From NCBI GenBank assembly GCA_002269645.1, contig NIVC01000142.1:1-64000 (forward strand): DNA of 64,000 bases, in the 5' to 3' direction. This DNA is from Macrostomum lignano. Taxonomy: Eukaryota. The notes under the pieces are model-generated. The model ran no database searches and was not told the DNA's origin. It saw only the letters and a program-made list of their open reading frames with translations. Shown piece after piece: positions 39,783 to 55,400 of the stretch (the stretch's first letter is position 1; every line of letters starts with the position of its first letter). A program made the position numbers and the translations under genes.

Positions 39783-42634
39783 TTCGAATAGATAGATTGA
39801 TTGATTGACAGATCGAGCTATTTAGTTCTTTAGATTGGCAATCGATTATAGCTGTTATTTATGCACTGCTAATGTCCTTTCCCCCTGTTTCCATAGCAAC
39901 AAGACACTAGCGCCAGCGTCCCCGGCAACAATGGCGGCAGCGCTTTCGTCCCCTACCGCGGCAGCAAACTGCCGCAGCAGAATGCATCAGCCCAAAAGCA
40001 GCAGCCAAGGCACAACGCCTTCAGCATGTCAGCCGGTGACATGATGGATGATTTCGATTTCGAAGGCAACCTGGCGCTGTTCGACAAGCAGGCCTTCTAC
40101 GCCATGGTGGACAGCGGCCAGACTCCCGAGCCGGACCTGGTGCGCACCGCCCAGCCACCCCAGCCGGAGCCGAAGCTGCGGCCAGACCAGAGCGTCCTGC
40201 TGCCCGGCGGTGCCGCTCCCGCCGCGCCATCTATCCAGGTAACTCCCCCCTAATAAATCTCCCCGAGAATCTCCCCCCTAATAAATCTCCCCGAGAATCT
40301 CCCCCCTAATAAATCTCCCTGAGAATCTCCCCCTAATAAATCTCCCTGAGAATCCCCTCTAATAAATCTCCCTGAGAATCTCCCCCCTAATAAATCTCCC
40401 CGAGAATCTCCCCCCTAATAAATCTCCCCGAGAATCTCCCCCCTAATAAATCTCCCTGAGAATCTCCCCCTAATAAATCTTCCTGAGAATCGCCCCCTAA
40501 TAAATCTCCCTGAGAATCTCCCCCCTAATAAATCTCCCTGAGAATCTCCCCCCTAATAAATCTCCCGAGAATCTCCCCCTAATAAATCTCCCCGAGAATC
40601 TCCCCCCTAATAAATCTCCCTGAGAATCTCCCCCTAATAAATCTCCCTGAGAATCCCCTCTAATAAATCTCCCTGAGAATCTCCCCCCTAATAAATCTCC
40701 CCGAGAATCTCCCCCTAATAAATCTCCTTGAAAATCGCCCCCTAATAAATCTCCCTGAGAATCGCCCCCTAATAAATCTTCCTGAGAATCGCCCCCTAAT
40801 AAATCTCCCTGAGAATCTCCCCCCTAATAAATCTCCCCGAGAATCTCCCCCCTAATAAATCTCCCTGAGAATCTCCCCCCTAATACATCTCCCCGAGAAT
40901 CTCCCCCTAATAAATCTCCCTGAGAATCTTCCCTAATAAATCTCCCTGAGAATCCCCTCTAATAAATCTCCCTGAGAATCTCCCCCCTAATAAATCTCCC
41001 TGAGAATCGCCCCCTAATAAATCTCCCTGAGAATCTCCCCATAATAAATCTCCCTGAGAATCGCCCCATAATAAATCTCCCTGAGAATCCCCCTTAATAA
41101 ATCTCCCTGAGAATCTCCCCCCTAATAAATCTCCCTGAGAATCGCCCCCTAATAAATCTCCCTGAGAATCTCCCCCTAATAAATCTCCCTGAGAATCGCC
41201 CCCTAATAAATCTCCCGGAAAATGGCCCCCTAATAAATCTTCCTGAGAATCGCCCCCTAATAAATCTCCCTGAGAATCGCCCCATAATAAATCTCCCTGA
41301 GAATCCCCCTTAATAAATCCCCCTGAGAATCGCCCCCTAATAAATCTCCCTGAGAATCGCCCCCTAATAAATCTCCCTGAGAATCGCCCCCTAATGAATC
41401 TCCCTGAGAATCGCCCTCTAATAAATCTCCCTGAGAATCGCCCCCTACTAAATCTCCCTGAGATCGCCCTCTAATAAATCTCCCTGAGAATCGCCCCCTA
41501 CTAAATCTCCCTGAGAATCGCCCCATACTAAATCTCCCTGAGATCGCCTTCTAATAAATCTCCCTTAGAATCGCCCCCTACTAAATCTCTCTGAGAATCG
41601 CCCCTAATAAATCTCACTGAGAATCGCCCCAAACCGCGTTCCGTCTCCTCAGGTGCCATGCAAAGTGGACTGCCAGTTTGCCACAGACGTGGGTCTCCCC
41701 GTGCCGTCTGTGACCGAGGAGCTCCGGGTGGCTGTCCTGTCTGCCGCTGATAAAGCCGGCTTAACGGCCGCCCGCTTAGCCGAAGCTTTTGGCCGCAGCG
41801 CGTCCGAGTTTCTGGTGAGCTGAATTGCAGTTCTTTTATGAGCTATGACTCAAATTGCAGTTCTTTTATGAGCTATGACTCAAATTGCAGTGCTTTTATG
41901 GGCTATGACTCAAATTGCAGTGCTTTTATGGGCTATGACTCAAATTGCTGTGCTTTTATGGGCTATGACTCAAATTCCAACTAGTTTATAACATTTAGAC
42001 TCTTTGAGCATTGATATTAAGGCTCTGTGTATCTGACCTCAGTTGACCTTGACTTCCAACCTGGCACCCAATCCAGGTGCAGCAGATGGGCGGGGCCAGC
42101 CGGCTGCAGCCGGGCAATCAGCACCAGCTGCCGCAGGTGGCCGTGCTAGTGGGGCCAGGCAGGCGCGGCCTAATGGGATTATCAATGGCTCGTCACCTGG
42201 CTAATAAAGAGGTTCGAGTGCACGTGTACTGCAGCGAACGCGAACTGGCGGCCTCAAGTGAGCTGGCCCAGGAAGTACAGCTGTTCCGCACCACCGGCTG
42301 TCCAGTGGTGCACAGCTGCCGCGACCTGCCCTGGCTGCTAGACTACATAGTTCTGGCCACTAGCGAGCCGGACAGCCCGGAGCACACCCTGGCCCTGTGG
42401 TGCCGCTCCAACAGGGCTCCGGTTGTTGGCGTGTGTCCTCAGCAACGAAACCCGGCTAGGTTGGAGTGCAAAATTAATCTGCAATACTGCCTACCGGTGC
42501 CCGTTGACGCTGGCTATGGCTCCACCTATCTGGTGGATGCTGGCATTACTAAACACGTCTATAGGCAGGTGGGCATCTTGTACGCCAGCCCCTTTGGCCA
42601 CCGGTCTGTGGTGCAGCTGCATGCGGCTAGTTGA
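38629..42634 (+). CDS. EDC3: Enhancer of mRNA-decapping protein 3 (Lsm, FDF and YjeF_N domains), 4 exons, about 528 aa
   Basis: Exons 38629..39153, 39897..40238, 41653..41814, 42077..42634, all phase 0 with GT-AG. N-terminal Lsm (FIGAQLQLDCGPLLGTFVGTV), FDF motif DDFDFEGNLALFDK, FATDVGLPVPSV...GLT, and YjeF_N GGASRLQPGNQHQLPQVAVLVGP...ARHLAN. Confidence 0.95.
39205..39800. repeat. (GATA)n microsatellite with periodic tattcgaa interruptions, EDC3 intron 1
   Basis: Direct reading. Confidence 0.97.
40244..41630. repeat. About 27-29-bp minisatellite (ccctaataaatctccctgagaatctccc)n, EDC3 intron 2
   Basis: Fills nearly the whole intron, starting 5 nt after the donor. Confidence 0.97.
41823..41978. 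repeat. 30-bp minisatellite (aattgcagttcttttatgagctatgactca)n, EDC3 intron 3
   Basis: About 5 copies. Confidence 0.93.
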
Positions 42635-42660: not shown

Positions 42661-42679
42661 TAGCTCGTATATATAATCG

Positions 42680-45600
42680 CTACACTAAGAACCCTAATCA
42701 CTGAACTAAGAACCCTAATCGCTACACTAAGAATCCTAATCGCTAAACTAAGAATCCTAATCGCTGAACTAAGAATCCAAATCGCTAAACTAAGAATCCA
42801 AATCTCAAACTTAAGAATCCTAATCTCTAAACTAAGAATCCTAATCTCTAAACTAAGAATCCTAATCTCTAAACTAAGAATCCTAATCTCTAAACTAAGA
42901 ATCCGAATCGCTAAACTAAGAATCCAAATCTCAAACTTAAGAATCCTAATCTCTAAACTAAGAATCCTAATCTCTAAACTAAGAATCCTAATCTCTAAAC
43001 TAAGAATCCTAATGCTGAACTAAGAATCCAAATCTCAAACTTAAGAATCCTAATCTCTAAACTATGAATCCTAATCTCTAAACTAAGAATCCAAATCGCT
43101 AAACTAATAATCCTAATCTCTAAACTAAGAATCCTAATCTCTAAACTAAGAATCCTAATCTCTAAACTAAGAATCCTAATCGCTAAACTAAGAATCCAAA
43201 TTTCAAACTTAAGAATCCTAATCTCTAAACTAAGAATCCTAATCTCTAAACTAAGAATCCTAATCTCTAAACTAAGAATCCTAATCTCTAAACTAAGAAT
43301 CCTAATCGCTAAACTAAGAATCCAAATTTCAAACTTAAGAATCCTCATCTCTAAACTAAGAATCCTAATCTCTAAACTAAGAATCCTAATCTCTAAACTA
43401 AGAATCCTAATCTCTAAACTAAGAATCCAAATCGCTAAACTAATAATCCTAATCTCTAAACTAAGAATCCTAATCTCTAAACTAAGAATCCTAATCTCTG
43501 AACTAAGAATCCAAATCTCAAACTTAAGAATCCTAATCTCTAAACTATGAATCCTAATCTCTAAACTAAGAATCCTAATCTCTAAACTAAGAATCCTAAT
43601 CGCTGAACTAAGAATCCTAATCTCTAAACTAAGAATCCTAATCTCTAAACTAAGAATCCTAATGCTGAACTAAGAATCCAAATCTCAAACTTAAGAATCC
43701 TAATCTCTAAACTATGAATCCTAATCTCTAAACTAAGAATCCTAATCGCTAAACTAAGAATCCAAATTTCAAACTTAAGAATCCTAATCTCTAAACTAAG
43801 AATCCTAATATCTAAACTAAGAATCCAAATTTCAAACTTAAGAATCCTAATCTCTAAACTAAGAATCCTAATATCTAAACTAAGAATCCTAATCTCTAAA
43901 CTAAGAATCCTAATATCTAAACTAAGAATCCAAATTTCAAACTTAAGAATCCTCATCTCTAAACTAAGAATCCTAATATCTAAACTAAGAATCCTAATCT
44001 CTAAACTAAGAATCCAAATCTCAAACTTAAGAATCCTAATCTCTAAACTAAGAATCCAAATCTCTAAACTAAGAATCCAAATCTCTAAACTAAGAATCCA
44101 AATCTCTAAACTAAGAATCCTAATCTCTAAACTAAGAATCCTAATCGCTAAACTAAGAATCCAAATTTCAAACTTAAGAATCCTAATCTCTAAACTAAGA
44201 ATCCTAATCTCTAAACTAAGAATCCTAATCTCTAAACTAAGAATCCTAATCTCTAAACTAAGAATCCTAATCGCTAAACTAAGAATCCAAATTTCAAACT
44301 TAAGAATCCAAATCTCTAAACTAAGAATCCAAATCTCTAAACTAAGAATCCTAATCTCTAAACTAAGAATCCTAATCTCTAAACTATGAATCCAAATCTC
44401 TAAACTAAGAATCCAAATCTCTAAACTAAGAATCCTAATCTCTAAACTAAGAATCCTAATCTCTAAACTAAGAATCCTAATCTCTAAACTAAGAATCCTA
44501 ATCTCTAAACTATGAATCCAAATCTCTAAACTAAGAATCCTAATCTCTAAACTAAGAATCCTAATCTCTAAACTATGAATCCTAATCTCTAAACTAAGAA
44601 TCCTAATCTCTAAACTAAGAATCCTAATCGCTGAACTAAGAATCCTAATCTCTAAACTAAGAATCCTAATCTCTAAACTATGAATCCTAATCTCTAAACT
44701 AAGAATCCTAATCTCTAAACTATGAATCCAAATCGCTAAACTAAGAATCCAAATCTCAAACTTAAGAATCCTAATCTCTAAACTAAGAATCCTAATCGCT
44801 AAACTAAGAATCAAAATCTCTAAACTAAGAATCCAAATCGCTAAACTAAGAATCCAAATCTCAAACTTAAGAATCCTAATCTCTAAACTAAGAATCCTAA
44901 TCGCTAAACTAAGAATCAAAATCTCTAAACTAAGAATCCTAATCTCTAAACTAAGAATCCTAATCTCTAAACTAAGAATCCTAATCTCTAAACTAAGAAT
45001 CCTAATCGTTAAACTAAGAATCCAAATTTCAAACTTAAGAATCCTAATCTCTAAACTAAGAATCCTAATCTCTAAACTAAGAATCCTAATCTCTAAACTA
45101 AGAATCCTAATCGCTGAACTAAGAATCCAAATCTCAAACTTAAGAATCCTAATCTCTAAACTATGAATCCTAATATCTAAACTAAGAATCCTAATCTCTA
45201 AACTATGAATCCTAATCGCTGAACTAAGAATCCTAATCTCTAAACTAAGAATCCTAATCTCTAAACTAAGAATCCTAATGCTGAACTAAGAATCCAAATC
45301 TCAAACTTAAGAATCCTAATCTCTAAACTATGAATCCTAATCTCTAAACTAAGAATCCTAATCGCTAAACTAAGAATCCAAATTTCAAACTTAAGAATCC
45401 TAATCTCTAAACTAAGAATCCTAATATCTAAACTAAGAATCCAAATTTCAAACTTAAGAATCCTAATCTCTAAACTAAGAATCCTAATATCTAAACTAGG
45501 AATCCTAATCTCTAAACTAAGAATCCTAATATCTAAACTAAGAATCCAAATTTCAAACTTAAGAATCCTCATCTCTAAACTAAGAATCCTAATATCTAAA

Positions 45601-47782
45601 CTAAGAATCCTAATCTCTAAACTAAGAATCCAAATCTCAAACTTAAGAATCCTAATCTCTAAACTAAGAATCCAAATCTCTAAACTAAGAATCCAAATCT
45701 CTAAACTAAGAATCCTAATCTCTAAACTAAGAATCCTAATCTCTAAACTAAGAATCCTCATCTCTAAACTAAGAATCCAAATCTCTAAACTAAGAATCCA
45801 AATCTCTAAACTAAGAATCCTAATCTCTAAACTAAGAATCCAAATCTCTAAACTAAGAATCCTAATCTCTAAACTAAGAATCCTAATCGCTAAACTAAGA
45901 ATCCAAATTTCAAACTTAAGAATCCTAATCTCTAAACTAAGAATCCTAATCTCTAAACTAAGAATCCTAATCTCTAAACTAAGAATCCTAATCGCTAAAC
46001 TAAGAATCCAAATTTCAAACTTAAGAATCCTAATCTCTAAACTAAGAATCCTAATCTCTAAACTAAGAATCCTAATCTCTAAACTAAGAATCCTAATCTC
46101 TAAACTAAGAATCCTAATCGCTAAACTAAGAATCCAAATTTCAAACTTAAGAATCCAAATCTCTAAACTAAGAATCCAAATCTCTAAACTAAGAATCCTA
46201 ATCTCTAAACTAAGAATCCTAATCTCTAAACTATGAATCCAAATCTCTAAACTAAGAATCCAAATCTCTAAACTAAGAATCCTAATCTCTAAACTAAGAA
46301 TCCTAATCTCTAAACTAAGAATCCTAATCTCTAAACTAAGAATCCTAATCTCTAAACTATGAATCCAAATCTCTAAACTAAGAATCCTAATCTCTAAACT
46401 AAGAATCCAAATCTCTAAACTAAGAATCCTAATCTCTAAACTAAGAATCCTAATCTCTAAACTAAGAATCCTAATCTCTAAACTAAGAATCCTAATCTCT
46501 AAACTAAGAATCCTAATCGCTGAACTAAGAATCCTAATCTCTAAACTAAGAATCCAAATCTCTAAACTAAGAATCCTAATCTCTAAACTAAGAATCCTAA
46601 TCTCTAAACTAAGAATCCTAATCGCTGAACTAAGAATCCTAATCTCTAAACTAAGAATCCAAATCTCTAAACTAAGAATCCTCATCTCTAAACTAAGAAT
46701 CAAAATCTCTAAACTAAGAATCCAAATCTCTAAACTAAGAATCCTAATCTCTAAACTAAGAATCCTAATCTCTAAACTAAGAATCCTAATCTCTAAACTA
46801 AGAATCCTAATCTCTAAACTAAGAATCCTAATCTCTAAACTAAGAATCCTAATCGTTAAACTAAGAATCCAAATTTCAAACTTAAGAATCCTAATCTCTA
46901 AACTAAGAATCCTAATCTCTAAACTAAGAATCCTAATCGCTGAACTAAGAATCCAAATCTCAAACTTAAGAATCCTAATCTCTAAACTAAGAATCCTAAT
47001 CTCTAAACTAAGAATCCTAATCTCTAAACTATGAATCCTAATCTCTAAACTAAGAATCCTAATCTCTAAACTATGAATCCTAATCTCTAAACTATGAATC
47101 CTAATCGCTGAACTAAGAATCCTAATCTCTAAACTAAGAATCCTAATCTCTAAACTAAGAATCCTAATCTCTAAACTAAGAATCCTAATCTCTAAACTAA
47201 GAATCCAAATCTCTAAACTAAGAATCCAAATCTCTAAACTAAGAATCCTAATCGCTAAACTAAGAATCCAAATCGCTAAACTAAGAATCCTAATCTCTAA
47301 ACTAAGAATCCTAATCTCTAAACTAAGAATCCTAATCTCTAAACTAAGAATCCAAATCTCTAAACTAAGAATCCAAATCTCTAAACTAAGAATCCTAATC
47401 TCTAAACTAAGAATCCTAATCGCTGAACTAAGAATCCTAATCTCTAAACTAAGAATCCTAATCTCTAAACTATGAATCCTAATCTCTAAACTAAGAATCC
47501 TAATCGCTGAACTAAGAATCCTAATCTCTAAACTAAGAATCCTAATCTCTAAACTATGAATCCTAATCTCTAAACTAAGAATCCTAATCGCTGAACTAAG
47601 AATCCTAATCTCTAAACTAAGAATCCAAATCTCTAAACTAAGAATCCTAATCTCTAAACTATGAATCCAAATCTCTAAACTAAGAATCAAAATCGCTAAA
47701 CTATGAATCCAAATCTCTAAACTATGAATCCAAATCTCTAAACTAAGACTCCTAATCTCTAAACTAAGAATCAAAATCGCTA
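42680..47782. repeat. 5.1-kb 21-bp satellite (ctaaactaagaatcctaatct)n with higher-order structure
   Basis: Direct reading; unit variants (ccaaatttcaaacttaag, cgct, ctatg) recur in blocks. Confidence 0.98.
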
Positions 47783-48484
47783 AATATCCATGTTGTATTT
47801 AGTAGTTCTATATCAAAGCGGGATACAGTATATCAGTATCTTAGGCTCTAAGTTGTATAATCATGGATGAAAGAAATTATTATAAATGAGTGAGTTTTTA
47901 TTGCAGTTAATAACACGTTGGTACTCGTAGATATTTTGTCCTTATCTACCCTTAGCGTATTGTCTAGTGTGATGCATTTCTTTTGTTCAACGGGACGCGA
48001 TGTACTTTTTATGCCTTCTATTGAAAGCATTGCTCCTTAGGCTTAAGTAGCCGTGTAGTACACAATTGAATCTTTATTAACTAACAGAAAATAAAGGGGG
48101 GGACCATACACTATTTGTTTCTGTATTCTCATGCGGTTACTTTTAGTAATATATTTAGCATTATTTCTACTACTCAATTAGTGTAGTGAGTATATTTACT
48201 ATCTGTATTAGGCGAGACAATTTGTCTATTTTATCTTTACTATATTTAGTCCCTGTCCACGGTATACTCGTTACAATGCGAAAGTCGATGTGTTCATTCA
48301 CCTATCTGCCTGTACATTGTTGTTTTGCTTACCCGCTTGTGTCCAACAGTTCTCTTGGAGATCAGCTCGTTGCGTTTAAATATATTTACTGTATTTAATG
48401 GCCTGATAATGTCGCCTTGTTTAATGTGTCTATTGTTTCATTTGCGTTAGCTGTTTTCAAAAACTCCCAGACTGTCAGTTGCTT

Positions 48485-49262
48485 GACCAGCCTCCCAGAT
48501 CCTTAGTTGCTAGGTCTTCCTTCACCCTCCCAGATCCTCAGCTGCTGGGCCTTCCTTCACCCTCCCAGATCCCCAGTTGCTAGGTCTTCCTTCACCCTCC
48601 CAGATCCTCAGTTGATGGGTCTTCCTTCACCCTCCCAGATCCTCAGCTGCTGGGCCTTCCTTCACCCTCCCAGATCCCCAGTTGCTAGGTCTTCCTTCAC
48701 CCTCCCAGATCCTCAGTTGCTGGGTCTTCCTTCACCCTCCCAGATCCTCAGTTGCTAGGTCTTCCTTCACCCTCCCAGATCCTCAGTTGCTGGGTCTTCC
48801 TTCACCCTCCAAGATCCTCAGCTGCTGGGCCTTCCTTCACCCTCCCAGATCCCCAGTTGCTAGGTCTTCCTTCACCCTCCCAGATCCTCAGTTGATGGGT
48901 CTTCCTTCACCCTCCCAGATCCTCAGCTGCTGGGCCTTCCTTCACCCTCCCAGATCCCCAGTTGCTAGGTCTTCCTTCACCCTCCCAGATCCTCAGCTGC
49001 TGGGCCTTCCTTCACCCTCCCAGATCCCCAGTTGCTGGGCCAGCCTCCCAGATTCTCAATTGCTGGGCCAGCCTCCCAGATCCTCAATTGCTAGGCCAGC
49101 CTCCCAGATCCCCAGTTGCTGGGCCAGCCTCCCAGATCCCCAGTTGCTGGGCCAGCCTCCCAGATCCCCGGTTGCTGGACCAGTCTCCCAGATCCCCAGT
49201 TGCTTGGCCAGCCTCCCAGATCCTCAGTTGCTGGGCCAGCCTCTCAGATCCTCAGATGCTGG
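48485..49262 (+). repeat. 35-bp minisatellite grading into a related 28-bp unit (cagcctcccagatcctcagttgctgggc)n
   Basis: Direct reading; translation periodicities of 35 and 28 aa confirm the unit lengths. Confidence 0.95.
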
Positions 49263-49412
49263 GCCACTCTCAGGCCTTCAGTTAAGGTGTTATTCAAGTA
49301 AGCCTTTAATTGTAATCCTGCCACCTAATGCTGCAATTATTAGGCATAATATTTGTCACGCACCGGAACTCATGAACCACTAGGCAGCAGTCCTGAGTCC
49401 CAGTAGCGTCTC

Positions 49413-49736
49413 ATGCATCACCAGCAGCAACCGCAGCAGCAGCACCGCCAGCATCAGGAAGCCGCCTCAGCCCCCATCCAGCAGGTGGATCTGGTATTCG
49501 GGCCGCTGATTCGCGACATATTCATTCACTACGCCAGCGATTCGCCCGGCACTACGGGAAAAATCCAGGAGCTTCGGCAAAAACTCGAGACAGCCAGACA
49601 GCAGATTGAGCAGGCCGAGGGTATCGACCTGGACTCTGAGACGCAGCGGAGTCTGCTGGACTGTCTGGTGCACAAGCACAAGGAGAAGAGCGACTTGCTG
49701 GCCCGCCTGCGGCAGTGGCATGAGCCTAATGAGTGA
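49413..49736 (+). CDS. MED9: Mediator of RNA polymerase II transcription subunit 9
   Basis: 107-aa ORF; VFGPLIRDIFIHYASDSP...IQELRQKLETARQQIEQAEGIDLDSETQRSLLDCLVHKHKEKSDLLARLR matches the recalled Med9 pattern FLPLVHNII...DSP...L..KFQE.R..I...PGI.LS.E.Q...L..L......KNELL.KYK. Confidence 0.85.
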   Translation: MHHQQQPQQQHRQHQEAASAPIQQVDLVFGPLIRDIFIHYASDSPGTTGKIQELRQKLETARQQIEQAEGIDLDSETQRSLLDCLVHKHKEKSDLLARLRQWHEPNE

Positions 49737-50298
49737 ATCTGTTTCCGGTGTCAATTCCGGTGCCCCATGTGTCTACACCGGTCCCTGTGAAGAAGCCAGC
49801 AGTGCTGAATGCGCCAGCTTCATGTCGCAGCTGTACCAGCTTCAACGAGTGTCCTGCGCCGACGGTCGCCAGTTCACGGGTTGGCTGTACACGGTGGACC
49901 CGGTCAGCCGGACCCGGGTGCTGGTTGACCTGGATGACCGGCAAGTGCACTTCCTACTGGCTGGAGCCACTGTCGAAGTCTCTCCGGTGCCGGGCGCTCA
50001 GCCGGCAACTGAGCAGCAGCGGATCGACATCGACAAGCTGGCTGTCGGGTGCGGCGCCGACGGCGAAGAACTCGACGACTCCGCTGTGGGATCGGCGACA
50101 ATCCAACGCCGCGACCAGGTGCGGGCCTGGTTTGCCAAGCACCGCATCGACTTGGCCGTGGGTGGCGAGGACTCGCTCAGCCTGACTCTAGGCGACAGTC
50201 TCACTATTAGGCCGCCCTACCTTGGCCGCACCTGCTATTGCAATAATGAGATTGTACTGGCCAGGTGTACTGCGCTGCTAGCCTTATTGCCGCCGTAG
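49720..50298 (+). CDS. GEMIN6: Gem-associated protein 6 (SMN complex, Sm-like fold)
   Basis: In-frame ATGs at 49720 and 49729, TAG at 50296-50298. FTGWLYTVDPVSRTRVLV, VRAWFAKHRI and LTIRPPY...CYCNNEIVLAR match Gemin6 (YKGWVLTTDPVSANIVLV, LKKWLEKNHI, LTIDPPY..NCSSSNEIILSR). Confidence 0.92.
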   Translation: MSLMSESVSGVNSGAPCVYTGPCEEASSAECASFMSQLYQLQRVSCADGRQFTGWLYTVDPVSRTRVLVDLDDRQVHFLLAGATVEVSPVPGAQPATEQQRIDIDKLAVGCGADGEELDDSAVGSATIQRRDQVRAWFAKHRIDLAVGGEDSLSLTLGDSLTIRPPYLGRTCYCNNEIVLARCTALLALLPP

Positions 50299-50438
50299 TA
50301 TCCGCTTTAGTTGCAAACTCCTAGCTAATGCTGCATGTTTTTCTAACTGTAAAACATCCTTCTTCTCTACTCACAGTAGCGGATTTGGCACTACTACCGT
50401 CTAAACTATTTGCATTAATTGCTTGCGTTTGTTCTATA

Positions 50439-50444
50439 AATAAA
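50439..50444 (+). terminator. Candidate poly(A) signal downstream of GEMIN6
   Basis: AATAAA about 140 nt after the GEMIN6 stop, followed by U-rich sequence. Confidence 0.6.
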
Positions 50445-50674
50445 TACATTGCCTTGTCTCTGCTTTCTCTATTCAATGACTTAGTGAAGCTTTCAATGAA
50501 GACTTTCTACCAGTATAGTTTTGCTTGCACTTTGTTCTTCCCAATCTTGACTTAGGTGCGGAAACAGGCGTGGGAAAGCAGTAAGTCGGCTGCTGTAATT
50601 TTCATAATGTTTAGTCACGATGTGAGACCAATGAACGGAATCAGTGTAACGTGTGTACTATTTTACCGGTCACT

Positions 50675-51378
50675 GTGTACACCAACCCGAGCTGTCACTG
50701 TGTGTACACCAACCCCAGCTGTCAGTGTGTACAACAGCCCCAGCTGTCAGTGTGTACACCAACACCAGCTGTCAGTGTGTACACCAACCCCAGCTGTCAG
50801 TGTGTACACCAACACCAGCTGTCAGTGTGTACACCAACCCCAGCTGTCAGTGTGTACACCAACCCCAGCTGTCACTGTGTACACCAACCCTAGCTGTCAG
50901 TGTGTACACTGGCTGTCACTGTACACCAACCCCAGCTGTCACTGTGTACACCAACCCCAGCTGTCAGTGTGTACACTGGCTGTCACTGTACACCAACCCC
51001 AGCTGTCAGTGTGTACACCAACCCCAGCTGTCAGTGTGTACACCAATCCCAGCTGTCACTGTGTACACCAATCCCAGCTGTCACTGTGTACACCAACCCC
51101 AGCTGTCAGTGTGTACACCAACACCAGCTGTCAGTGTGTACACCAACCCCAGCTGTCACTGTGTACACCAACCCTAGCTGTCAGTGTGTACACTGGCTGT
51201 CACTGTACACCAACCCCAGCTGTCACTGTGTACACCAACCCCAGCTGACACTGTGTACACCAACCCCAGCTGTCACTGTGTACACCTACCCCAGCTGACA
51301 CTGTGTACACCAACCCCAGCTGTCACTGTGTACACCAATCCCAGCTGTCATTGTGTACACTGGCTGTCACTGTGTACA
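50675..51378. repeat. 25-bp minisatellite (tgtgtacaccaaccccagctgtcag)n
   Basis: Direct reading; lies between the convergent GEMIN6 and AFF-like 3' ends. Confidence 0.96.
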
Positions 51379-52419: not shown

Positions 52420-55400
52420 TCAGGTAGCCCCGACAGCTGCACTGCTGGAACCCAGCACGTCGGCCGCAGCCTGCAGGTAGGCCAACAGGTGGCTCAACCG
52501 GTCGGACGGACCGGCCGGCCGGAAGCCGCTCAGCCGGACGGCTTCCTCTTCAAGTCGGACCAAATCTGGGGATTCCGCGAGAAGCTTGTCTCGATTGCGC
52601 ATCATGTGTGCCCAGGTCTCCGTGGCGTGGTACAGGTGTAACAGGTGGCCCAAGAACTGCTCCCGCTGCTCAGCGGCTAGATTGCCATTCTTCATGGCTG
52701 CGCTGTGATTGGCCAGCTCCTGTCTGGAGGAGGGTGGGGAGTGGCAGAGTCAATCTATATCACTGCTGCTCTGTGATTGGCCAGCTCCTGTCTGGAGGAG
52801 GGTGGGGAGTGGCAGAGTCAATCTATATCACTGCTGCTCTGTGATTGGCCAGCTCCTGTCTGGAGGAGGGTGGGGAGTGGCAGAGTCAATCTATATCACT
52901 GCTGCTCTGTGATTGGCCAGCTCCTGTCTGGAGGAGGGTGGGGAGTGGCAGAGTCAATCTATATCACTGCTGCTCTGTGATTGGCCAGCTCCTGTCTGGA
53001 GGAGGGTGGGGAGTGGCAGAGTCAATCTATATCACTGCTGCTCTGTGATTGGCCAGCTCCTGTCTGGAGGAGGGTGGGGAGTGGCAGCATACATGCGCAA
53101 CCTCCAAAATTCGGTCGGCCGTGCGACTTAGTTTTAACAAAAATGCGACGTAGTTTTTGGCCAAAAATGCGACTTACATGTAAAAAAACCCGAAAGCAAA
53201 ATTAACGCAACTTTGGGTAAACGGCAGGAGTAACTATGACTGTCTTAAAAAGCCAAGATGCCTCGTCAGCTACTTAGTACTACTACTTGGTGTTTTTTCG
53301 GGTGGGCATTTTTGCGACTTCCTTGGTTGGCCGCCAAATCGGTCGGCCGGATCGGCCGACTTGGCCGACTGTTGCACATGTATGAGTGGCAGAGTCAATC
53401 TATATCACTGCTGCTCTGTGATTGGCCAGCTCCTGTCTGGAGGAGGGTGGGGAGTGGCAGAGTCAATCTATATCACTGCTGCTCTGTGATTGGCCAGCTC
53501 CTGTCTGGAGGAGGGTGGGGAGTGGCAGAGTCAATCTATATCACTGCTGCTCTGTGATTGGCCAGCTCCTGTCTGGAGGAGGGTGGGGAGTGGCAGAGTC
53601 AATCTATATCACTGCTGCTCTGTGATTGGCCAGCTCCTGTCTGGAGGAGGGTGGGGAGTGGCAGAGTCAATCTATATCACTGCTGCTCTGTGATTGGCCA
53701 GCTCCTGTCTGGAGGAGGGTGGGGAGTGGCAGAGTCAATCTATATCACTGCTGCTCTGTGATTGGCCAGCTCCTGTCTGGAGGAGGGTGGGGAGTGGCAG
53801 AGTCAATCTATATCACTGCTGCTCTGTGATTGGCCAGCTCCTGTCTGGAGGAGGGTGGGGAGTGGCAGAGTCAATCTATATCACTGCTGCTCTGTGATTG
53901 GCCAGCTCCTGTCTGGAGGAGGGTGGGGAGTGGCAGAGTCAATCTATATCACTGCTGCTCTGTGATTGGCCAGCTCCTGTCTGGAGGAGGGTGGGGAGTG
54001 GCAGAGTCAATCTATATCACTGCTGCTCTGTGATTGGCCAGCTCCTGTCTGGAGGAGGGTGGGGAGTGGCAGAGTCAATCTATATCACTGCTGCTCTGTG
54101 ATTGGCCAGCTCCTGTCTGGAGGAGGGTGGGGAGTGGCAGAGTCAATCTATATCACTGCTGCTCTGTGATTGGCCAGCTCCTGTCTGGAGGAGGGTGGGG
54201 AGGACAGGGAAAAATATGGTTCTTAGAACTGGAATAATATTGAACTTGTTTTTATCCGAGACTGAAAATTGCTACACCTGAAAGGAGGCAGAGGCTCGGC
54301 TTGGCAACCAAATTCGACTAGAAATTTAAAAAATGGACCTAAAACTGAATTTTTTACAGAATATTTGCAAGCTAGAGTGTGCAACAGCACGCAGTAAGTC
54401 ATTTTTACGGACAACTTTCCGCAGTGCGCTCCACACTGGAACGCATACAGTATATTCTAAATGTGGCTTAAATATTACCAACTGCCATACGACACAAGAT
54501 AGATAAGGCAGAGAAGAGGGTAAGCAAGCTGTTTGCAAAAAAATTAACGCAATAAATAGGCTGTGGATCATCGCTACAAATGCAGAACCGGATGTGGCTG
54601 GTGAATTTTACTGTAACTGAATTATTTATATTTTTGTACTCTTATTGAATCAGCCATGAATGCTCCACCCCAACCCAACGGGGCCACTACAGCTGCCAAC
54701 TTACCTGTGAATAGAACGCAAATTCTGTTAAAGCCAAGACAGAATGCGCATCCAGTATTAGGATGGAAACTAACTGGTACAGTACATATTCCAGGCCAAC
54801 GGGGGAGACGGAGAGAAATTTAAAAGTACAGTTTAGCGGAATAGCTGGAAAAACAACTTGTTTAAGTTAGACTGGAATGCGAAGGCAGCGGAATGGGGGG
54901 AAGGCCGCATGACTGCAGCAGCATGGCAACAGATAATAATAATAAACCCAAACAGACTTTTTAGCTAAAAACAAACTCATTTATATCATGCCTATTTTTA
55001 TCTGTGTGCAGTCAGTGCTAATGATCTCCCAGAAATACGACCATAATGCAAATGAACATTGTGGTCCAACTGAGGATCTGGAAGGCTGGCTAAACAACTG
55101 AGGATCTGGGAGGCTGGCTAAACAACTGAGGATCTGGGAGGCTGGCTAAACAACTGAGGATCTGGGAGGCTGGCTAAACAACTGAGGATCTGGGAGGCTG
55201 GCACAGCAACTGAGGATCTGGGAGGCTGGCCAAACAACTGAGGAGCTGGAAGGAACTGAGGATCTGGGAGGAACTGAGGATCTGGGAGGCTGGCCCAGCA
55301 ACTGAGGATCTGGTAGGTTAACCCAGCAACTGAGGATCTGGAAGGCTGGCCCAGCAACTGAGGATCTGGAAGGAACTGAGGATCTGGGAGGAACTGAGGA

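Follow-up and report, generated by a model that had tools for sequence, protein, structure and literature searches.

The genes for MED9, a Mediator subunit, and GEMIN6, a subunit of the SMN complex, lie one behind the other on the same strand of Macrostomum lignano scaffold NIVC01000142.1, and the end of the first ORF overlaps the start of the second. Taken with the recurrence of the same pair in other animals, this arrangement points to what appears to be an old two-protein transcription unit. That both cistrons share one mature mRNA, and the route by which the second is translated, are matters that we infer from the genomic sequence. An initial annotation of the 64,000-nt stretch of the scaffold analysed here (the window) had described two same-strand ORFs in different frames with an overlap of 17 or 8 nt, and direct reading confirms it. 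The features on which the argument turns are the following.

48491..49266, no strand assigned: 35-bp and 28-bp tandem arrays, directly 5' of the unit
49276..49281, plus strand: CTTCAG, the sole YTNCAG match in 49250-49900, which might serve the whole unit as SL acceptor (motif from PMC8629364)
49404..49406, plus strand: in-frame TAG two codons 5' of the MED9 ATG, which ties the start of MED9 to this exon
49413..49736, plus strand: MED9 ORF, 107 aa, intronless and full length (ATG 49413, TGA 49734-49736)
49416..49719, plus strand: 304-nt stretch with no ATG in any frame, the body of MED9 (direct reading, shuffles)
49713..49715, plus strand: CAG four nt ahead of the first GEMIN6 ATG, the only plausible internal trans-splice acceptor, with a weak pyrimidine tract
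49720..49736, plus strand: MED9/GEMIN6 overlap ATGAGCCTAATGAGTGA, 17 nt, in which the GEMIN6 ATGs at 49720 and 49729 precede the MED9 TGA (direct reading)
49720..50298, plus strand: GEMIN6 ORF, 192 aa, intronless (ATG 49720, TAG 50296-50298)
50439..50444, plus strand: AATAAA, the only one near the unit, 141 nt past the GEMIN6 stop and presumed to be a shared poly(A) signal
50669..51360, no strand assigned: 25-bp tandem array, directly 3' of the unit

The first ORF matches Pfam Med9 (PF07544) over residues 49-101 with E=3e-8 (3.1e-8) and 34 bits, against a cut-off of 26.9 bits. Its closest solved structure is human MED9 (7emf_I; E=5e-4; query residues 6-100 against chain residues 42-136). The MED9 alignment, which includes the human protein, matches the M. 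lignano and Owenia proteins end to end, the N-terminal 'VDL.F.P.' segment included. The second ORF lies in the +1 frame relative to MED9 and contains the Gemin6 Sm-like domain (PF06372, 23.2 bits against 23.9) and Gemin6_C (PF20417, 31.2 bits against 33.4) in the right order, both slightly below the Pfam thresholds. At E<=1e-3, phmmer with this ORF returns 124 homologues, the best of which, apart from itself, has E=3e-15 and spans residues 37-187; wherever the source names them, they are called gem-associated protein 6, as in Aplysia, Patiria, Saccostrea, Owenia and others. A profile built from 40 homologues, with the window protein as its first row, finds the flatworm paralogue (98% identical) at E=2.8e-35 and matches the human Gemin6 structures 1y96 and 7bbl at 1e-20. 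Judged by these domain, homologue and structure matches, the two ORFs are bona fide MED9 and GEMIN6 genes, the identities that they had been given at the outset.

Where does GEMIN6 begin? The NCBI gene call, a hypothetical protein of cluster Mlig014426, starts at ATG 49720; starting at ATG 49729 would shorten the overlap to 8 nt. The next ATG in the GEMIN6 frame encodes Met35 (49822..49824, plus strand), and the initial annotation had raised a start there, clear of MED9, as a way in which the overlap might disappear. That start is rejected, because Met35 aligns with the conserved internal Met of a 'W-M-Q-Y' segment ahead of which Gemin6 homologues have 10-35 residues. This segment falls inside the region of similarity to the solved human Gemin6 structures, and the conserved N-terminal segment of the homologues aligns with flatworm residues ~24-40. 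With Met35 internal to a conserved segment, the GEMIN6 start must be 49720 or 49729, and thus inside MED9.

A sequencing indel, also raised at the outset as a possible source of the frame relationship, is not the cause: three separately assembled genomic copies from M. lignano, the other two on scaffolds NIVC01003533.1 and NIVC01002330.1, have identical MED9, the same overlap and the same relation of frames. The identity of the three copies also makes a selection test on MED9 impossible, and this, together with the lack of a MED9 annotation in M. lignano, could suit the idea that the two ORFs are chance neighbours or a decaying gene, with MED9 a relic in the GEMIN6 5' UTR that yields no functional protein. 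We consider this most improbable, since the MED9 ORF is intact and full length with its Med9 domain above threshold, the M. lignano protein set yielded no second MED9, and the same pairing with an intact MED9 is present in four named species. A +1 ribosomal frameshift in the 130-nt doubly open region (49606-49736) would instead produce a MED9-Gemin6 fusion. GEMIN6 is indeed in the +1 frame, and open from 49606, but no frameshift motif was recognised, other species have stops in all frames of the spacer or other frame relations, and a search for a Med9 domain in ten unusually long Gemin6 homologues found none (0/10), so that a fusion is scarcely credible.

The signals around the two ORFs bear on whether they could be processed separately. 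The claim that the only AATAAA lies downstream of GEMIN6, at 50439, holds. Of 14 variant poly(A) hexamers sought in 49736-50435, none occurs except AATAAT at 50242, so apart from that site a MED9 mRNA must read through GEMIN6; MED9 appears to have neither room for, nor a signal of, separate 3'-end formation. The MED9 CDS contains no GT[AG]AG donor, and 49282-49900, which includes that CDS, has no match to YTNCAG. This is the reported SL-acceptor motif of M. lignano, present at 44% of known SL sites (PMC8629364), and at that frequency its absence from MED9 is weak evidence. Rfam families and an SL RNA gene were sought in the window and none was found. The upstream YjeF_N gene lies at a repeat-adjusted distance of 891 nt, and the unit may itself be a downstream member of an operon.

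The same two genes are found together well beyond flatworms. MED9 was sought at other loci by tblastn and with a purpose-built HMM applied to fetched GEMIN6 loci; 10 hits of that HMM, which includes a human MED9 sequence, were re-tested against the Pfam Med9 threshold, and 10/10 pass. A word-index search for MED9 homologues gave no matches. A MED9 ORF or last MED9 exon lies closely 5' of GEMIN6, on the same strand, in Lottia gigantea, Owenia fusiformis and Paralvinella palmiformis, and likewise on the majority of the further contigs with Gemin6 that were examined. Gemin6 loci were also collected by a metagenome scan with a 10-sequence alignment, and 13 of 18 have an upstream MED9 by HMM. At a further locus, L020, the contig opens inside the MED9 C-terminus, where the HMM is only marginal (E=0.05) and MED9 was recognised by reading the translation, which brings the count to 14/18. 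Across Lottia, Owenia, Paralvinella and ten further contigs with the tandem, spacers run from -25 to +80 nt in most; individual values are as follows.

Lottia gigantea: 17 nt
Owenia fusiformis: 80 nt
L018, identified as Paralvinella palmiformis by 100% Gemin6 identity: TGATG overlap
L006: 37 nt
L026: ATGATG over the TGA
L027: 2 nt
Five further loci: 28-40 nt
L019 and L023: 255 nt and about 750 nt

At the loci examined in Ptychodera, Holothuria, Microctonus and a rotifer, MED9 is absent upstream of GEMIN6. That the tandem recurs in one mollusc and in two annelids indicates an inherited, tightly packed unit and not a pair of chance neighbours, and argues strongly that the two genes would form one transcription unit. 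To our knowledge, SL trans-splicing does not occur in molluscs and annelids, so the MED9-GEMIN6 unit of these animals is not one that SL addition could resolve.

How might two proteins be produced from such a unit? The reading that we tentatively prefer, while conceding that it may well be wrong, is that 49413-50460 represents, in Macrostomum, an old two-cistron gene, with one mRNA from which Gemin6 would be translated by leaky scanning. MED9 and GEMIN6, both intronless, would be transcribed as a single mRNA ending past the AATAAA at 50439. Some scanning 40S subunits would initiate at the poorly placed MED9 AUG (cgtctcATGc, with C at both -3 and +4) to give MED9. The remaining subunits would pass it, meet no AUG for 304 nt, and start at 49720 (agtggcATGa, G at -3) or 49729 (agcctaATGa, C at -3) to make Gemin6. 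The contexts of the MED9 ATG and the first GEMIN6 ATG are as originally reported; their ranking follows a generic metazoan rule that may differ from the M. lignano Kozak consensus.

The absence of any ATG between the MED9 ATG and the one at 49720 had also been noted, and this too is correct. Mononucleotide shuffles of the 304 nt (60% GC) predict 3.3 ATGs, with P(0)=0.03, and dinucleotide shuffles predict 4.3, with P(0)=0.002. The ATG-free stretch (P=0.002-0.03), and the weak MED9 context beside the better one of GEMIN6, would count for leaky scanning. The initial annotation went further and called this combination a hallmark of the mechanism, and here the outcome is mixed: the depletion exceeds that of shuffled sequence, but it leaves no codon-level signal. 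Given the MED9 protein sequence, an out-of-frame ATG is possible at only two dipeptides, and 63% of synonymous recodings contain no ATG either. Avoidance of ATG at the codon level is thus unsupported, and the depletion sits in the amino acids of MED9 (no Met, few suitable dipeptides) and not in codon choice. The MED9-family baseline of 0.92 ATG per 100 nt gives P(0) of only ~0.06 for the M. lignano stretch, and the repeat-rich window has many ATG-free gaps as long as this one, the MED9 gap ranking 38th. No special RNA structure was found at either start codon.

Comparison with other species, which had been suggested as a check, likewise cuts both ways: the synteny recurs, but an ATG-free MED9 is not common to Owenia, Lottia and L016. 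At 12 other loci, MED9 last exons have 0.92 ATG per 100 nt and the adjoining GEMIN6 ORFs have 2.91, while in Owenia, Lottia and L016 the complete MED9 CDS together with its spacer contains 3-6 additional ATGs. The Owenia MED9 AUG has a strong context (A at -3, G at +4), and the start contexts of MED9 versus GEMIN6 are inconsistent across orthologous loci. With such ATGs inside MED9 in Owenia, Lottia and L016, leaky scanning cannot hold for the unit in general and would be, at best, a Macrostomum-specific solution.

The same dicistronic mRNA could also be read by termination-coupled reinitiation, in which ribosomes would finish MED9 at UGA 49734-49736, leaving the 40S subunit to move back by 5 or 14 nt to the AUG at 49729 or 49720. 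Both flatworm GEMIN6 ATGs are suitably placed, within 17 nt of the MED9 stop, and the presence of ATGs in the MED9 genes of Owenia, Lottia and L016 presents no difficulty. Moreover, it is the closeness of stop and start that is conserved across lineages, from TGATG in Paralvinella and the similar junction of L026, through 2 nt in L027 and 17 nt in Lottia, to 28-40 nt at five loci. Precedents come from viruses: in calicivirus VP1/VP2, influenza B M1/BM2 and pneumovirus M2-1/M2-2, the restart AUG overlaps or slightly precedes the stop of a long upstream ORF. The MED9-GEMIN6 pair resembles these cassettes in having the restart AUG at the upstream stop, with UGAUG-type junctions in Paralvinella and L026. 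The viral process, however, needs a specific upstream element able to pair with 18S rRNA, and more generally reinitiation after ORFs as long as MED9 (~100 codons) normally requires a dedicated element upstream. The junction has no unusual structure (fold of 49690-49810, z=-0.04). The longer spacers of Owenia (80 nt), L019 (255 nt) and L023 (about 750 nt) are ill-suited to tight coupling, and reinitiation leaves unexplained both the ATG-free body of MED9 and its weak AUG. We therefore regard it as an unlikely route.

Perhaps GEMIN6 has its own mRNA, a rival that the initial annotation had raised only as a way in which its reading could fail. An SL might be trans-spliced to an AG, such as CAG 49713-49715, within the 3' end of MED9, or transcription might start internally, in which case MED9 and Gemin6 would come from mutually exclusive products and GEMIN6 would be the 3' UTR of the MED9 mRNA. 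In M. lignano ~30% of genes are SL trans-spliced and ~15% are in operons (PMC8629364), and multi-SL precursors make up 6.9% of assembled transcripts (PMC5730564). A CAG does stand 4 nt ahead of the first GEMIN6 ATG, and the ATG-free body of MED9 would serve equally well as a GEMIN6 5' UTR begun anywhere within it. In other species it is mainly the last MED9 exon that is depleted in ATG, as expected if GEMIN6 is served by a start site in the last intron. In Drosophila, CG42518, the partner of MED9, has an alternative monocistronic transcript whose splice variant disrupts the MED9 CDS (PMC4528330). The pyrimidine tract before CAG 49713 is nevertheless weak (13% T), and neither this site nor any other within MED9 matches YTNCAG. 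Furthermore, an SL joined there would place its terminal AUG in the MED9 frame and create an ORF of 8 codons, the SL AUG followed by seven sense codons of MED9, running across both GEMIN6 AUGs.

The operons of M. lignano that are resolved by SL addition (Ustyantsev & Berezikov 2021, PMC8629364) do resemble the unit in grouping same-strand housekeeping genes and in tolerating surrounding repeats. Their cistrons, however, are typically ~100 nt apart, with a separate poly(A) site and YTNCAG (PMC8629364), whereas MED9 and GEMIN6 overlap by 17 nt (a distance of -17 nt) with neither signal between them. In molluscs and annelids, moreover, the tandem is either older than SL trans-splicing or present without it. 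Finally, a separate message should have left a stand-alone 107-aa MED9 gene model in the annotation, yet there is none. On balance a separate GEMIN6 mRNA is a serious alternative that we judge rather improbable. That MED9, though longer than 100 aa, has no place in an annotation based on transcript evidence agrees with the preferred reading of one mRNA, for which a single gene model would keep the longer ORF only. The identifier Mlig014426 received no mention in the searchable literature or supplements, and exact-protein look-ups for M. lignano returned genome scaffolds only, with no RNA assemblies.

On sequence grounds, the MED9-GEMIN6 pair would join a known kind, the dicistronic genes of metazoans. 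The nearest case is Drosophila melanogaster MED9, a 5' cistron encoded solely on dicistronic transcripts and 28 nt from CG42518 (FlyBase; Crosby et al. 2015, PMC4528330 File S1). As in M. lignano, MED9 comes first and the spacer is tiny, with partners unrelated in sequence; in contrast, the fly partner is CG42518 instead of GEMIN6, and the fly ORFs do not overlap. Gemin6 is reported to be lost in Drosophila (PMC6385987), and the wasp Gemin6 locus has no MED9 upstream. Another Drosophila precedent is provided by stoned (stnA/stnB) and Snapin, where the first cistron is AUG-free and translation of the second was shown experimentally to depend on that absence (Wall et al. 2005, J Biol Chem 280:27670, as cited in PMC11892635). 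These genes share with the M. lignano unit a dicistronic animal mRNA with a first cistron devoid of AUGs. They differ in that the dependence is experimental there and inferred here, that the M. lignano ORFs overlap, and that the ATG-free state is not common to orthologous MED9s. Green-algal nuclear bicistrons read by leaky scanning, documented by long-read cDNA, Ribo-seq and reporters (PMC7896298; PMC11892635), have the same weak ORF1 start, AUG depletion ahead of ORF2, short ORF1 and conservation. They belong to another kingdom and are experimentally supported, whereas the M. lignano unit is known from its sequence.

Wherever annotation could be checked, namely in M. lignano (GCA_002269645.1), Lottia gigantea and Owenia fusiformis, the MED9 at the GEMIN6 locus is unannotated. 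MED9 probably goes uncalled on account of a longer ORF on the same transcript, and if so, claims that MED9 is absent from such genomes would be artefacts. The occurrence of MED9 as upstream cistron in both the fly pair and the MED9-GEMIN6 pair suggests either that MED9 is predisposed to that position or that the pairing is older than the animals sampled. A broader proposal, which we advance with some doubt, is that the dicistronic MED9-GEMIN6 gene is ancient, dating back at least to the mollusc/annelid-flatworm split and being possibly protostome-wide, that non-canonical initiation on one mRNA is the obligatory source of both a Mediator and an SMN-complex subunit, and that MED9 is systematically unannotated for that reason. 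As a corollary, if the pair is that ancient, fly CG42518 could be a diverged remnant of the lost Gemin6.

Production of a transcription co-activator subunit would then be tied to that of an snRNP-assembly factor, a coupling that is as yet unexplained. The short list of nuclear dicistronic genes would gain a deeply conserved animal case, with three phyla named, and because transgenesis is available in M. lignano, the choice between leaky scanning and reinitiation should be directly testable in the animal itself.

Two ORFs of the window, in different frames of the forward strand, overlap by a few codons:

49413-49736 (+): ORF1, MED9; ATG at 49413, TGA at 49734-49736; 107 aa
49720-50298 (+): ORF2, GEMIN6, from the ATG at 49720; 192 aa, +1 frame relative to ORF1

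An in-frame TAG lies two codons 5' of the MED9 ATG. The MED9 ORF matches Pfam Med9 above the gathering score, and its top match among solved structures is human MED9 (7emf_I). The GEMIN6 ORF matches both the Sm-like and the C-terminal Pfam Gemin6 domains slightly below threshold; an exhaustive phmmer search returned 124 homologues, called gem-associated protein 6 wherever the source supplies a name, and a profile built from 40 of the 124 leads to the human Gemin6 structures 1y96 and 7bbl.

Could GEMIN6 instead begin downstream of MED9, at Met35 (49822)? Gemin6 homologues share an N-terminal segment before the Sm strands (consensus H-P-I-F..D-P..W-M-Q-Y-V-Y-K-E-V), which falls inside the region matching solved human Gemin6 in the profile search. 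Met35 aligns with the conserved internal Met of this segment, an equivalent preceded by 10-35 residues in the homologues, and is ruled out as the start. GEMIN6 must therefore start at 49720 or 49729, and the overlap described in the initial annotation is real. Comparison of three genomic copies also rules out a sequencing indel that fuses the two frames. Two more copies of the locus, on NIVC01003533.1 (L001) and NIVC01002330.1 (L003), agree with the partly duplicated state of the M. lignano genome (PMC8629364). The three copies show no difference through MED9 and the overlap; directly after it, in the N-terminal tail of Gemin6, L001 (10017-10040, against window 49736-49760) carries a 12-bp insertion and three substitutions, and its GEMIN6 has one further non-synonymous and one synonymous change. 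Given the invariant MED9 and overlap and the in-frame nature of the L001 insertion, the two separate frames are not an indel artefact. The identities of the ORFs and their overlap are virtually certain.

As a synteny check in other species revealed, MED9 followed by GEMIN6 recurs in Lottia, Owenia, Paralvinella and further contigs. A scan of metagenome contigs returned 18 loci with Gemin6 relatives, and HMM searches detect, in 13 of them, a same-strand MED9 ORF or exon ahead of Gemin6; the contig of a fourteenth (L020) opens within the MED9 C-terminus, which is marginal by HMM (E=0.05) and was recognised from its translation. All ten upstream ORFs checked (10/10) pass the Pfam Med9 threshold. 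Owenia fusiformis MED9 has 97 aa in three exons (L010 4714-4766, 5487-5581, 5775-5920) and that of Lottia gigantea 95 aa in two. L018 is Paralvinella palmiformis, its Gemin6 being 100% identical to that species' protein P0156, and the Gemin6 proteins of other linked contigs, where a comparison could be made, most resemble those of bivalves, gastropods or annelids. In Ptychodera flava, Holothuria leucospilota, the wasp Microctonus hyperodae, the rotifer Didymodactylos carnosus and contig L004, the region upstream of Gemin6 yielded no MED9. Conservation of the tandem in Mollusca, Annelida and Platyhelminthes is nearly certain.

Distance between MED9 stop and Gemin6 ATG, in nt (negative values, overlap; L-numbers, Gemin6-bearing contigs)
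L026: -25 / -4 / -1 / +11
M. lignano: -17 / -8
Paralvinella (L018): -1 (TGATG) or +11
L027: +2
Lottia (L012): +17
L029: +28
L014 / L015: +32 / +31
L006 (Logan contig, last MED9 exon): +37
L021: +40
L016: +56
L020: about 57
Owenia (L010): +80
L019: +255
L023: about 750

One contig, L016 (Ga0099809_11040975, 1-1104), holds a complete MED9, the spacer and a complete Gemin6 within 1.1 kb. Its MED9 is unbroken at the intron position of Lottia, Owenia and L006, so that the contig resembles the cDNA of a spliced dicistronic message.

Since the spacers of under 60 nt found in most lineages are too short for a terminator plus promoter, and molluscs and annelids to our knowledge lack spliced-leader (SL) trans-splicing, the ancestral state was very probably one transcription unit. 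In the flatworm the two ORFs appear to have been pushed together until they overlap, with loss of the MED9 intron(s); the M. lignano pair is very probably still a single unit. The sole AATAAA lies at 50439, as originally noted, and of 14 variant poly(A) hexamers screened from the MED9 stop to 50435 only AATAAT (50242) is present. The unit occupies about 1.4 kb of unique sequence (59% GC), an island amid large tandem arrays, which also account, in translation, for many of the window's long 'ORFs':

42077-42634 (+): upstream gene, 540-aa product with YjeF_N domain, end about 42634
42674-47784: 21-bp unit, 243 copies
48491-49266: 35- and 28-bp units
50669-51360: 25-bp unit, 29 copies
52697-53000: 68-bp unit, 4.5 copies

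With the arrays subtracted, 891 nt separate the YjeF_N gene from the MED9 ATG; as this is below the repeat-adjusted limit of 1 kb used for M. lignano operon calls, the pair may itself sit downstream in an operon. Its 5' UTR could include an intron of about 100 nt (49298-49403), bounded by a consensus donor (CAA|GTAAGC at 49298) and one of the CAG acceptors at 49385-49403; removal of this intron would drop the sole two upstream ATGs near MED9 (49328, 49372).

About 30% of M. lignano genes receive a 35-nt SL, AUG-terminated, by trans-splicing, and operons comprise about 15%, with intercistronic distances peaking near 100 nt and the acceptor YTNCAG (PMC8629364). Gemin6 might thus have an mRNA of its own, made by trans-splicing or an internal start. 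However, MED9 contains neither YTNCAG nor a consensus donor. Its sole candidate acceptor, CAG at 49713-49715, follows a T-poor tract, and a leader joined there would place its AUG in the MED9 frame, spanning both GEMIN6 AUGs. The published annotation offers an indirect argument against this rival: its transcripts are split wherever SL and poly(A) sites were mapped by experiment (PMC5730564), so that a separate MED9 model, given the 107-aa ORF, should probably have produced a protein entry; none is on record. The 64-kb window holds no copy of the SL sequence and no Rfam family reaching the gathering score. A separate mRNA is doubtful, yet keeps an appreciable share of the probability because YTNCAG marks only 44% of known SL sites (PMC8629364). 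We lean towards translation of Gemin6 from an mRNA that also bears an intact MED9.

How would ribosomes reach the second cistron? The start contexts agree with the initial annotation: that of MED9 is weak (C at -3, C at +4) and that of the first GEMIN6 ATG is better (G at -3). The locus has ATGs at 49413, 49720 and 49729 and none between the first two. The initial annotation expected 3-4 there; shuffles of the 304 ATG-free nt predict 3.3 (mononucleotide, P(0)=0.03) or 4.3 (dinucleotide, P(0)=0.002); the adjoining GEMIN6 ORF has 1.04 per 100 nt. Only two dipeptides of the protein are able to create an out-of-frame ATG, and 63% of synonymous recodings are ATG-free, so the depletion lies in the protein sequence itself, which lacks an internal Met and has few suitable dipeptides, and not in codon choice. 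Gaps this long are common in the repeat-rich window, where this one ranks 38th. The depletion is a real but moderate signal. Precedents for leaky scanning include Drosophila stoned/Snapin, as cited in PMC11892635, and green-algal bicistrons (PMC7896298; PMC11892635), and we tentatively consider this route possible in M. lignano, at somewhat under even chances.

Outside M. lignano, complete MED9 CDS plus spacer contain three extra ATGs in Owenia and six each in Lottia and L016, and in Owenia the context of the MED9 AUG is A at -3 with G at +4, which speaks against leaky scanning as a general mechanism. At 12 Gemin6-linked non-flatworm loci (L006, L010, L012, L014, L016, L018, L019, L021, L023, L026, L027, L029), the last MED9 exons have 0.92 ATG per 100 nt, with 22 observed and about twice as many (43) predicted by composition, and the adjoining Gemin6 ORFs 2.91 (146 observed against 95, about 1.5x). 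Either leaky scanning of a partial kind or Gemin6 transcripts that start in the last MED9 intron would fit this contrast. The conserved stop-start proximity rather suggests that ribosomes terminating on MED9 reinitiate at Gemin6: junctions of classic termination-reinitiation form, with UGAUG, AUGAUG or a 2-nt spacer, occur at L018 852-868, L026 1778-1816 and L027 1583-1590. Considering that a dedicated element is normally required past a 100-codon ORF, such coupling is unlikely; RNA structure at the junction and start codons shows nothing unusual.

MED9 is uncalled in the annotations of Owenia (CAIIXF020000009.1, L010 4714-5920), Lottia (KB203251.1, L012 5494-5983) and the window (49413-49736), in each case as an intact ORF passing the Pfam Med9 threshold. 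It seems that annotation keeps one CDS per transcript and drops the shorter upstream cistron. Within the literature searched, no paper pairs MED9 with GEMIN6 in this way or links MED9 to the term 'dicistronic'. Among animals such two-cistron genes are well known, Drosophila having 159 pairs. There, too, MED9 is a 5' cistron: it is carried on dicistronic transcripts only, and CG42518 follows after 28 nt (PMC4528330 File S1). Gemin6 is regarded as lost in Drosophila (PMC6385987). CG42518 might be a diverged Gemin6, a reading made less parsimonious by the wasp Gemin6 locus, which is without MED9. The MED9-GEMIN6 pair is set apart from known dicistronic genes by its occurrence in at least three phyla, its stop-start overlap and, in the flatworm, a fully ATG-free first cistron.
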